Sequence record: KU686213.1
Reading direction: 5' to 3' (one strand)
Length of the DNA: 64,000 bases
The notes beneath the pieces were generated by a model. The model was not told the DNA's origin, made no database searches, and saw only the letters and a program-made list of their open reading frames with translations. Below, piece after piece: positions 19,454 to 39,076 of this stretch (position 1 is the first letter of the stretch; every line of letters begins with the position of its first letter). The translations under genes were made by a program, and so were the position numbers.

Positions 19454-19623
19454 TTGTTGCCGTTGATTATGCCCTCCTCCTAGGTGAGATGGAGGGTGTT
19501 TATGCTAAACTAAAACAGCTAGGGACCACCGAGGAACTAGCATATGTTGAGGCTATGAAGAAGAAGTATTATAAAGAATACTTCGCACTACTCCGAGAAG
19601 AAAGGGCAGCCGAACAGGCTTGA
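19450..19623 (+). CDS. Conserved small hypothetical
   Basis: LLGEMEGV...EAMKKKYYKEYF pattern; ATGA overlap. Confidence 0.5.
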   Translation: MIVAVDYALLLGEMEGVYAKLKQLGTTEELAYVEAMKKKYYKEYFALLREERAAEQA

Positions 19624-19648
19624 CCTAACCACCAAGACCTGCTATACT
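19620..19648 (+). promoter_or_regulatory. Sigma70-like promoter for tRNA-Arg
   Basis: TTGACC-17 nt-TATACT with extended TG. Confidence 0.75.
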
Positions 19649-19662
19649 AAACAGGTCACCAA

Positions 19663-19737
19663 GCCTCAGTAGCTCAGTGGAATTAGAGCACGGAGTTTCT
19701 ACCTCTGCGGTCGGGGGTTCGAGTCCCTCCTGAGGCG
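19663..19737 (+). tRNA. tRNA-Arg(TCT)
   Basis: Cloverleaf GCCTCAG/CTGAGGC, anticodon loop TT-TCT-AC, GGTTCGAGT T-loop, A20 after G18G19; no encoded CCA. Confidence 0.93.
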
Positions 19738-19977: not shown

Positions 19978-20169
19978 ATGGCTAAGCAACTCCGTATGGA
20001 TCTCATTGATGAGTATTACAAGCTATACCGTGAGCGGACTCTATGCCGTCACACCAAAGATTTTAGAGACAACTACGAAAAGATTAGTGAGCTGTGGGTA
20101 GATTTTTCAGAAGAAGAGCGTATCGCAATCAATATACGCTTCATCCAAGACAACTTGAATAAGTTCTAA
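19978..20169 (+). CDS. Hypothetical protein
   Basis: 63-aa ORF between tRNA genes. Confidence 0.5.
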   Translation: MAKQLRMDLIDEYYKLYRERTLCRHTKDFRDNYEKISELWVDFSEEERIAINIRFIQDNLNKF

Positions 20170-20198
20170 TCTTGTGATATAATACGGTCAACAGACCT

Positions 20199-20271: not shown

Positions 20272-20300
20272 TTGACAATCATCACCTTCTCTGGTATGAT
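20272..20300 (+). promoter_or_regulatory. Sigma70 promoter (copy 1 of a 33-bp direct repeat)
   Basis: TTGACA-17 nt-TATGAT. Confidence 0.85.
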
Positions 20301-20312
20301 TGTTTCATCTTC

Positions 20313-20385
20313 GGGGAATTAGCTCAGTTGGTAGAGCGCCTGCTTTGCAAGCAGGATGTCAACGGTTCGAGTCCGTTATTCTCCA
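20313..20385 (+). tRNA. tRNA-Ala(TGC)
   Basis: GGGGAAT/ATTCTCC with G3:U70, loop TT-TGC-AA, A73. Confidence 0.96.
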
Positions 20386-20414
20386 TTGACAATCATCACC
20401 TTCTCTGGTATGAT
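20386..20414 (+). promoter_or_regulatory. Sigma70 promoter (copy 2 of the 33-bp direct repeat)
   Basis: Identical to 20272-20300. Confidence 0.85.
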
Positions 20415-20421
20415 TGTCGCA

Positions 20422-20551
20422 TAAGAGAAGCACCTGTTAGGATGGTGGTCGCCTAGAATTCAAGGTGGCAGAGGCGGATTACCTCCCGTCCGAGACGAAG
20501 CGTTTAAGTTAGTCCTTTGGTAAATGGCAGTTCAAATCTGCCCTTCTCTTA
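20422..20551 (+). ncRNA. tRNA-like ~130-nt RNA of unknown function
   Basis: 9-bp terminal stem TAAGAGAAG/CTTCTCTTA adjoining a perfect T-arm GGCAG-TTCAAAT-CTGCC; begins at the predicted +1 of the adjacent promoter; no canonical anticodon arm. Confidence 0.7.
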
Positions 20552-20556
20552 AAAAT

Positions 20557-20641
20557 GGAGAGGTGGTCGAGTGGTTTATGGCTCTGGTCTTGAAAACCAG
20601 CGAGGTGAAAGCCTCCGTGAGTTCAAATCTCACCCTCTCCG
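20557..20641 (+). tRNA. tRNA-Ser(TGA)
   Basis: GGAGAGG/CCTCTCC, loop CT-TGA-AA, long variable arm, G73. Confidence 0.96.
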
Positions 20642-20645
20642 CTTT

Positions 20646-38864: not shown

Positions 38865-39046
38865 TTCTACAAAAACTAAGTGGTGGAGCCAACTTATAGT
38901 TGACCCTTATGCCCTTGTCGGATGGGCTTTATAAATGCCGACTGGCGCGTCGTAGCAAAGGTTTCTCACTCTTCCTTAAAGAGTGAGTGGTGCGGATGAT
39001 TTCATCGCATGGTTTTGCGATTCCATTTAAAGATCGTATGGCGAGC
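38854..39046 (+). ncRNA. wcaG-RNA-like structured RNA: four tandem pseudoknot-UGGYG modules
   Basis: Repeated S1-loop-S1'-AAA linker-S2'-TGGYG architecture; directly upstream of a gmd/fcl(wcaG) cluster, the context described for the cyanophage wcaG RNA motif. Confidence 0.65.
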
Positions 39047-39076
39047 ATGTTAATATACCCAATCATTTTTTGATGC

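Follow-up and report, generated by a model that had tools for sequence, protein, structure and literature searches.

An unannotated element in the tRNA array of phage S-CAM7

The 64,000-nucleotide (nt) stretch of DNA analyzed here (the window; from sequence record KU686213.1) includes a tRNA array, within which lies a 130-nt element at positions 20422-20551 that is the subject of this study. This region matches Synechococcus phage S-CAM7 isolate 0910SB42 (KU686213; Kyanoviridae, Mazuvirus) with 100% identity, and ARAGORN and Rfam together place seven tRNAs between positions 19663 and 20901. The element is inside a 171-nt gap without annotation that separates tRNA-Ala (20313-20385) and tRNA-Ser (20557-20642); it is on the same strand as the tRNAs, with the next tRNA beginning 3 to 5 nt downstream. 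It contains no open reading frame (ORF), no reading frame is conserved, and the region is unannotated in all three GenBank records that contain the sequence. An earlier reading of the DNA letters alone (the original prediction) had proposed that this tRNA cluster contains an unannotated gene for a tRNA-like RNA, preceded by its own promoter, and the sequence comparisons described below support such a gene. All window features are on the plus strand unless stated otherwise.

Copies and conservation

We looked for copies by BLAST against 50,697 phage records and by scanning IMG/VR and metagenome contigs; the collection scans used exact patterns, and more divergent members have probably been missed. 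BLAST matches were restricted to the siphovirus S-SKS1 (Llyrvirus) and to two S-CAM7 isolates, out of three distinct ones in the collection, and the pattern scans added three IMG/VR and 14 metagenome contigs, giving 20 copies with 13 distinct sequences when flanks are included. All 20 are in tRNA arrays and on the tRNA strand, and the flanking tRNAs vary: the 5' neighbor is Ala, Pro, or Asn, and the 3' neighbor is Ser(TGA), Gln, or Leu. The conservation boundaries are sharp, falling at 20422 and exactly at 20551, and the 3 to 5 nt ahead of the next tRNA differ between copies.

The mean pairwise difference within the element is 0.019, compared with 0.021 for tRNA-Ala and 0.044 for tRNA-Ser, and the element is therefore conserved to the same degree as real tRNAs. 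It is 4 to 10 times more conserved than the adjacent spacers, for which the differences are 0.088 (promoter and leader) and 0.206 (3' spacer). A loop-anchored pattern that allows the stems to covary returned only known copies from IMG/VR, and no homolog was detected by nhmmer in 57 marine phage tRNA arrays, whose other ∼170-nt gaps, where looked at, hold unrelated sequence or small ORFs. For a bacterial counterpart, 185,579 species genomes (one per species) were scanned twice; the first scan yielded nothing, and the second two chance matches with neither the stems nor the T arm. The third S-CAM7 isolate, 0910CC49, is without a block composed of the element and tRNAs Ser, Thr, and Arg(CCG), and its array consists of Arg, Met, Ala, and Asn (L079; NC_031927, 141250-144283).

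Fold of the 130-nt type

The structure of the 130-nt type (type A) was derived using RNAalifold on an alignment of the copies, and the fold is of greater stability than those of shuffled versions (z = -2.9 to -3.1). Its ends form a 9-bp terminal stem, P1, in which TAAGAGAAG (20422-20430) pairs with CTTCTCTTA (20543-20551), and P1 adjoins a T arm, GGCAG-UUCRAAU-CUGCC (20526-20542), in which position 57 is a purine in all copies. The original prediction had described both the 9-bp closing stem and a perfect T arm (GGCAG-TTCAAAT-CTGCC) next to it, and both are indeed present in the sequence. It had also drawn three internal arms, only the first of which has survived comparison. This arm, CACC/GGTG, is kept in the RNAalifold structure as the D-arm-like hairpin H1 (20431-20447; stem 20431-20434/20444-20447), with a 9-nt loop, UGUUAGGAU, that contains GG. 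The second, CGCCT/AGGCG, can pair in the window and is broken in five of eight distinct homologs, and the third, TTACC/GGTAA, likewise pairs in the window and is broken in seven of the eight. RNAalifold and the pattern of substitutions favor two other arms in their place: H2 (20448-20469), a 7-bp GUCGCCU/AGGUGGC stem closed by the 8-nt loop AGAAUUCA, and H3 (20473-20490), a 5-bp GRCGG/CCGUC stem with the 8-nt loop AUUACCUC. H2 stands in the place of an anticodon arm and its loop is not a decoding loop, in agreement with the earlier observation that the 130-nt element offers no 7-nt anticodon loop. The H4 region (20491-20521) is either one irregular hairpin or two small ones, the two alternative folds each being 100% compatible with the alignment, and a junction, UGGYAAAU (20518-20525), precedes the T arm. 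H3 and H4 are confined to type A, and the junction is shared with a divergent type B described below.

Type A varies at eight sites, all by transitions, and the four that are located in stems all keep pairing; they include a G.U to A-U change in H2, a G-C to G.U change in the T arm, and G.U/A-U variation in H3. The G.U pairs together with the T-loop consensus indicate that the RNA is on the plus strand. The order of the arms (D-like, second arm, extra hairpins, and T) is that of a class II tRNA, with two departures in geometry: there are zero nucleotides between P1, H1, and H2, and the acceptor/T stack is 14 bp (9 + 5) versus 12 bp in tRNA.

We note that 11 nt in the H3 loop region, GGAUUACCUCC (20478-20488), are invariant in type A and resemble the 3' end of 16S rRNA, which we take to be GGAUCACCUCC, at 10 of 11 positions. 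An anti-Shine-Dalgarno role was considered and set aside, as type B has no H3 and the one near-perfect complement that the window offers is inside an ORF; the likeness is a curiosity specific to type A.

A divergent type and compensatory changes

A covariance model built from the 130-nt type (R1) was used to search ∼1.1 Mb of marine phage loci, and was then rebuilt (R2). One clear new member was found, a 98-nt sequence located between tRNA-Lys and tRNA-Gly in an S-SKS1-like contig (L152:1680-1777), for which R1 gives 34 bits and R2 gives 57 bits, compared to 19 bits or less for ordinary tRNAs. This type B sequence folds on its own as a clean five-helix cloverleaf (z = -3.7). Its P1 is a perfect 9 bp with a sequence unlike that of type A, its H1 stem is identical to the type A stem and has a loop (GAAGG) that also contains GG, and its H2 is 7 to 8 bp with a loop motif, AAYUCA, common to both types. 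A single extra arm replaces H3 and H4, the junction UGGUAAAU is shared, and the T arm is present.

When type B is included in the alignment, 13 pairs are changed on both sides and are still paired (seven of the nine in P1, four in H2, and two in the T stem), and 100% of the cells are paired, a result reached by none of 500 shuffles, with slid controls giving 0 to 3. The covariation in the terminal and T stems that the original prediction had proposed to look for, using a covariance model of homologous loci, was thus found through the divergent type B paralog. Because the outermost two P1 pairs covary, the acceptor/T stack is 14 bp rather than 12 bp, and the earlier suggestion of an RNA processed by RNases P and Z, along with the CCA addition that was to be checked, is therefore in part doubtful. 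The roles put forward in the original prediction, as a decoy for anticodon nucleases or a binder of EF-Tu or of a synthetase, are speculative.

The type A and type B sequences show greater similarity to one another than either does to any of 391 distinct tRNAs; none of these 391 has a CACC/GGUG stem in the H1 position, and no parent tRNA is identifiable among them. Covariation of the outer P1 pairs, the mutual closeness of the two types, and the uniqueness of the CACC/GGUG stem relative to these tRNAs argue for descent of types A and B from a common noncanonical ancestor, with selection acting on the predicted fold.

These same comparisons bear on the possibility that the element is a decaying class II tRNA, a functionless relic that is carried along with functional tRNAs. 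Such a relic would have its arms in tRNA order and could be dispensed with as in isolate 0910CC49, and the covariance model does give class II tRNAs weak scores. It could also collapse, and in S-SKS1 the type B locus between tRNA-Lys and tRNA-Gly (L003:2106-2180) retains the promoter and leader hairpin of type B with an RNA reduced to a single-hairpin remnant. Decay does not, however, account for 13 double changes that preserve helices between the types, or for the non-tRNA peculiarities that both share (the 9-bp stem, zero-nt linkers, AAYUCA loop, and UGGUAAAU junction). Nor does it fit a diversity that equals that of functional tRNAs and is well under that of the spacers, or the failure to identify a parent among the 391 tRNAs, and we consider this explanation quite unlikely.

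Several other sequences were noted in these searches. A 100-nt tRNA-like sequence in a 188-kb viral contig (L163:571-670) lies 3 nt upstream of tRNA-Glu and scores 24 bits with R2; besides a T arm, it has a D-like hairpin, GUGGUAAAU, and a bulged terminal stem of 7 bp, and has neither an ARAGORN nor an Rfam call. This sequence may represent a third type, or else an analog of independent origin. Model matches in two other loci (L160 and L162) are to ordinary tRNAs that have GGUAAAU and a T arm in common with the model. A further match (in L018) is to the T arm of a genuine permuted transfer-messenger RNA (tmRNA) and does not represent a homolog. This tmRNA is circularly permuted (the two-piece type), is located in a marine phage tRNA array (L018:2457-2757, minus strand), and has the tag ANNIVSFRRTAVAV*.

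Promoters and the predicted transcription start

A sigma-70-type promoter is located at 20386-20414, upstream of the element, with a -35 hexamer TTGACA (20386-20391), a 17-nt spacer, and a -10 hexamer TATGAT (20409-20414). It ends 7 nt before the P1 stem, as the original prediction had reported; we find in addition that it agrees with the consensus at 11 of 12 positions and has an extended -10 TG at 20406-20407. The promoter accompanies the element in 20 of 20 copies, with an invariant -10 and a variable spacer. An 8-bp inverted repeat spans it (20388-20418), with GACAATCA (20388-20395) matching TGATTGTC (20411-20418); because the repeat is broken in one copy (L067), it is not strictly required. 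The 33-nt cassette formed by this region (20386-20418) recurs with one mismatch ahead of tRNA-Ala (20272-20304), where zero matches are expected by chance, and in both cassettes the -35 and -10 boxes are spanned by an inverted repeat of 8 bp.

There are four promoter-like sites of one geometry in the array, ahead of tRNA-Arg, tRNA-Met, tRNA-Ala, and the element, and several tRNAs of the array thus seem to have individual promoters, judging from these motifs. The sites preceding tRNA-Arg(TCT) and tRNA-Met, at 19620-19648 and 20155-20183, are of the extended -10 type and lie 13 to 15 nt upstream of the tRNAs. The distance from the -10 hexamer is 13 to 15 nt for the tRNAs and 7 nt for the element stem, and with a gap this short, transcription of type A is expected to start right at the foot of P1, near 20421. 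The predicted start is the A at 20421, 7 nt past the -10 hexamer as placed by promoter geometry; the CA directly ahead of P1 is invariant, and the base preceding it varies (G, C, or T). In type B, a consensus promoter (TTGACA-17-TATAAT) with an inverted repeat over the -35 (GACAAGA/TCTTGTC) is followed by a leader of ∼15 nt with a short hairpin.

This arrangement raises the question as to whether the element is simply a cis-acting leader of the tRNA operon, a 5' precursor module that protects the 5' end, guides tRNA folding or processing, or isolates the promoter, and has no role once it is cut off. Both types are the first unit past a promoter and directly ahead of tRNAs, the type A stem starts at the predicted +2 position, and 5'-terminal helices are known to stabilize bacterial transcripts. 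But tRNA-Ala, behind the same cassette, makes do with a leader of only ∼6 nt, and the same holds for tRNA-Met and tRNA-Arg, so no such leader is needed. Moreover, 130 nt with a conserved T loop, a D-like loop with GG, and conserved loop motifs exceeds what 5' protection calls for. We regard a cis-acting leader as unlikely.

Exchange between tRNA arrays

The block consisting of tRNA-Ala, the element, and tRNA-Ser is 96 to 99% identical between S-CAM7 and S-SKS1, and the other tRNA types that the two phages share are 65 to 71% identical. Because the identity of the block is so far above that of the other tRNAs, it points to recent exchange between unrelated phages of the same host, one a myovirus and the other a siphovirus. 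A third copy of the 33-nt cassette in isolate 0809CC03 brackets an extra tRNA-Pro. In four of the 20 contigs (L066, L005, L063, and L069), an HNH-like gene is inserted directly after the element, and the insertion is accompanied by a duplication of the first 22 nt of tRNA-Ser; the ORF is 105 amino acids (L066:1666-1983) and matches Pfam HNH_3 with an E value of 5e-5, a match that falls short of the curated cut-off. In T4-like phages, modules are known to be shuffled by way of promoter/stem-loop (PeSL) cassettes (PMC4122927, PMC2839356). Together, the promoter repeats, the HNH-like gene, and such cassette shuffling would explain the arrival of the element in both a myovirus and a siphovirus. 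The element thus moves between tRNA arrays as a promoter-plus-gene cassette, and it is dispensable, with one isolate being without it.

An alternative is that the unit under conservation is DNA rather than RNA, that is, a mobile cassette maintained as a substrate for recombination or homing together with its repeated promoter, with its uniformity reflecting recent spread. The near-identity of the Ala-element-Ser block across the two phages, the repetition of the promoter cassette at the flanks of insertions and deletions, and the HNH-like gene beside the element with its duplicated piece of tRNA-Ser in four contigs would all be expected. However, mobility accounts for spread and not for a canonical T loop, strand-specific G.U pairs, and compensatory changes in three helices, and the HNH-like gene is present in only a minority of the contigs (4 of 20). 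A purely DNA-level explanation therefore seems improbable.

A proposed tRNA-shaped, nondecoding RNA

We propose that the element most likely encodes a stable, tRNA-shaped, nondecoding small RNA that would act in trans as a mimic and belongs to a previously undescribed family in the tRNA arrays of marine Synechococcus phages, a reading that we hold with moderate confidence. Transcription would be early, with the RNA leading the tRNA operon as its first unit. The type A transcript would start from the foot of P1 and perhaps need no 5' cleavage, and the type B leader would have to be removed; the 3' end would be set by the RNase P cut of the downstream tRNA, followed by trimming. A tRNA-like corner, formed by the GG of the D-like loop against the T loop, would give stability and would bind a protein that recognizes tRNA shape, such that the RNA would work in trans as a tRNA mimic, outside of translation. 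Our leading guesses for the partner are a host tRNA-directed nuclease or an enzyme of tRNA processing or modification. The CCA-adding enzyme and EF-Tu measure the acceptor/T helix, and the 14-bp stack makes both CCA addition and EF-Tu binding doubtful. The missing CCA in the element is itself uninformative, because none of the phage tRNAs in the window encodes CCA.

Several observations weigh against this proposal. The RNA is known here from its sequence alone. All of the compensatory changes come from one divergent sequence, the alignment of which was fitted to the model, and they therefore amount to one evolutionary comparison. Type A by itself has only its eight variable sites and no double changes, and its uniformity could stem in part from recent spread. 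With its 14-bp stack, and with no linker joining the terminal stem to the D-like arm, the RNA deviates from the geometry of a tRNA, so recognition by tRNA-binding proteins is not assured, and there is no candidate partner protein among the nine neighboring genes scanned. Finally, the element is missing from isolate 0910CC49 and its type B relative is only a hairpin in S-SKS1, and the element is therefore not essential.

We also entertain a more specific scenario, which is speculative and to which we assign a low probability. In this scenario the mobile, promoter-equipped, tRNA-shaped family would serve as a counter-defense or takeover factor, imitating the tRNA corner with no decoding loop and so occupying or misleading a host protein that recognizes tRNA shape, and would be spread among unrelated cyanophages by recombination between promoter repeats and by gene conversion assisted by homing endonucleases. 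If so, targets might be a tRNA-cleaving defense nuclease or a processing or modification enzyme, and the element would provide a tractable model for the long-unexplained species 1 RNA of phage T4. Clusters of tRNA genes in phages are usually read as a supply of ordinary tRNAs for codon usage or antidefense. Natural isolates with the element (0910SB42 and 0809CC03) and without it (0910CC49), with Synechococcus listed as the host (WH7803 where a strain is given), make the role of nondecoding tRNA mimics in phages directly testable.

Neighboring genes and other features of the window

Among the nine neighboring genes scanned, there is neither an RNA ligase gene nor a Ro-like (Ro/TROVE) gene. A neighboring gene annotated as a cytidylyltransferase was considered as a CCA-adding enzyme and rejected; it matches the Pfam family CTP_transf_like (PF01467) and not the tRNA nucleotidyltransferase family, and from this family assignment is probably not a CCA-adding enzyme.

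Two features elsewhere are of note for annotation. A wcaG RNA motif (RF01761, 77 bits) is present at 38957-39052, upstream of GDP-mannose dehydratase and fucose synthetase genes, and is overlain by a minus-strand gene for a 45-amino-acid hypothetical protein in GenBank (window positions 38929-39066), which is probably spurious. In related arrays, a 'tRNA-Pyl(cta)' (L002:785-858 and L071:266-341), annotated in MT586120 and called by ARAGORN in L071, has the anticodon loop CTTCTAA, which is the same as that of tRNA-Arg(TCT) of isolate 0910CC49; from this identity it looks like a register miscall and not an amber suppressor. The tRNA-Arg(TCT) of the window (19663-19737) has a different anticodon stem.

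Comparison with known RNA classes and systems

The element has no match in Rfam 15, either at the gathering thresholds or at E values up to 10, and ARAGORN calls neither a tRNA nor a tmRNA on it, and the same is true of type B; these scans, which the original prediction had suggested, thus matched no known family. The element represents an annotation gap, having been missed by Rfam, ARAGORN, and the GenBank records alike.

Canonical tRNA (RF00005) gives no match at E values up to 10 over 20422-20551 or on type B. Canonical tRNAs have a 7-bp acceptor stem, a 2-nt linker (positions 8 and 9), and a 12-bp stack, whereas the element has a continuous 9 bp and no linker. They also have a 5-bp anticodon stem and a 7-nt loop with U33 and a purine at 37, in contrast to the 7-bp stem and AGAAUUCA loop of type A, which is without either residue; the second-arm loop of type B, UAACUCA (7 nt, from the model alignment) or AACUC (5 nt, from the minimum-energy fold), also has neither. 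The T arm is the feature that does conform, with a 5-bp stem and a loop of the form UUCRANY. The lengths and sequences of the loops and the 14-bp stack rule out a decoding tRNA. With class II tRNAs (Ser, Leu, and Tyr) and extended-acceptor tRNAs, the element shares arm order, a canonical T loop, and GG in the D-like loop; type B also resembles these tRNAs in having a five-helix cloverleaf and a long extra arm. The extended-acceptor kinds, tRNA-Sec (8/5 or 9/4) and allo-tRNAs (8/4 or 9/3), offset the longer acceptor by a shorter T stem, giving 12 or 13 bp in all, and have a decoding loop. The element stacks 14 bp and has no canonical loop, and the tRNA-Sec family (RF01852) matches neither it nor type B.

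As in tmRNA, the ends of the element pair beside a T arm and an anticodon is lacking. Genes for tmRNA are present in the tRNA arrays of cyanophages, although tmRNAs are >250 nt versus ∼130 nt for the element. The original prediction had pointed to a short tmRNA-like tag reading and, correctly, to the lack of the G3:U70 alanine identity pair, which is A-U in either stem register. The tag does not hold up, with its TAA stop being present only in the two S-CAM7 isolates carrying the element and replaced by CAA in 17 of the 20 copies. A tmRNA is thus rejected from the absence of G3:U70, the unconserved tag stop, and the silence of ARAGORN here, even though it calls the true permuted tmRNA in L018.

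A broader version of these ideas is that the RNA is an aminoacylated adaptor, whether an unusual tRNA, a suppressor, or a mini-tmRNA acting in translation. The canonical T arm, D-like loop, and location in tRNA arrays would fit such a role, and a related phage array does carry a true permuted tmRNA. Yet there is no ARAGORN or Rfam call, the loops (8 nt in type A, 7 or 5 nt in type B) have no U33 or R37, and one loop base at the would-be anticodon position varies. With G3:U70 absent and the tag stop not conserved, and as a 14-bp stack is ill-suited to either EF-Tu or the ribosome, we regard an adaptor as highly improbable.

Nondecoding copies of the tRNA corner are familiar from YrlA, mascRNA, and the tRNA-like RNAs of MHV68, which are made or bound by tRNA-recognizing proteins. 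The bacterial Y RNA YrlA (RF02553) has no match on the element, and the two differ in that the termini of YrlA form the Ro-binding stem and its acceptor-like stem is capped, whereas the termini of the element form the acceptor-like stem itself.

At the level of the cassette, PeSLs offer a parallel, in that a repeated early-type promoter with an inverted repeat lies beside small modules and at insertion/deletion boundaries (PMC4122927, PMC2839356). The differences are that the PeSLs described consist of a terminator stem-loop plus a promoter and flank protein genes, whereas in the present cassettes the repeat and the promoter boxes overlap and the genes alongside are of tRNA type. The PeSL-type traits that we see in the sequence (a repeat, a promoter match, an inverted repeat that is broken in one copy, and insertion/deletion boundaries) make the 33-nt cassette a candidate for similar behavior, and the element illustrates the exchange of tRNA-array modules between a myovirus and a siphovirus.

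The nearest analog of the element appears to be the T4 species 1 RNA (rnaC), with the likeness being one of architecture and context, and the original prediction was fair in naming it. Like the element, rnaC is noncoding and similar in size (139 nt versus 130 nt), and it belongs to a phage tRNA array, where it has the same orientation as the tRNAs. Its terminal stem directly adjoins a canonical T arm (GGUUCGAAUCC), large hairpins replace the decoding arm, and it has no Rfam family. The T4 cluster also has a homing endonuclease gene, segB, much as relatives of this phage have the HNH-like gene. The two are nonetheless distinct, as rnaC has a short terminal stem with mismatches and no D-like arm, whereas the element has a perfect 9 bp, a D-like arm, and its own promoter. 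Neither R1 nor R2 has a match on the T4 region (L061), and homology between the two is thus not detectable. To our knowledge, the tRNA-like stable RNAs of T4 have been without a known function for about fifty years and without comparative data. The element would constitute a second, independent family of phage tRNA-like stable RNAs, with clear boundaries, two divergent types, and its own promoter, and an old question thereby becomes a comparative one.

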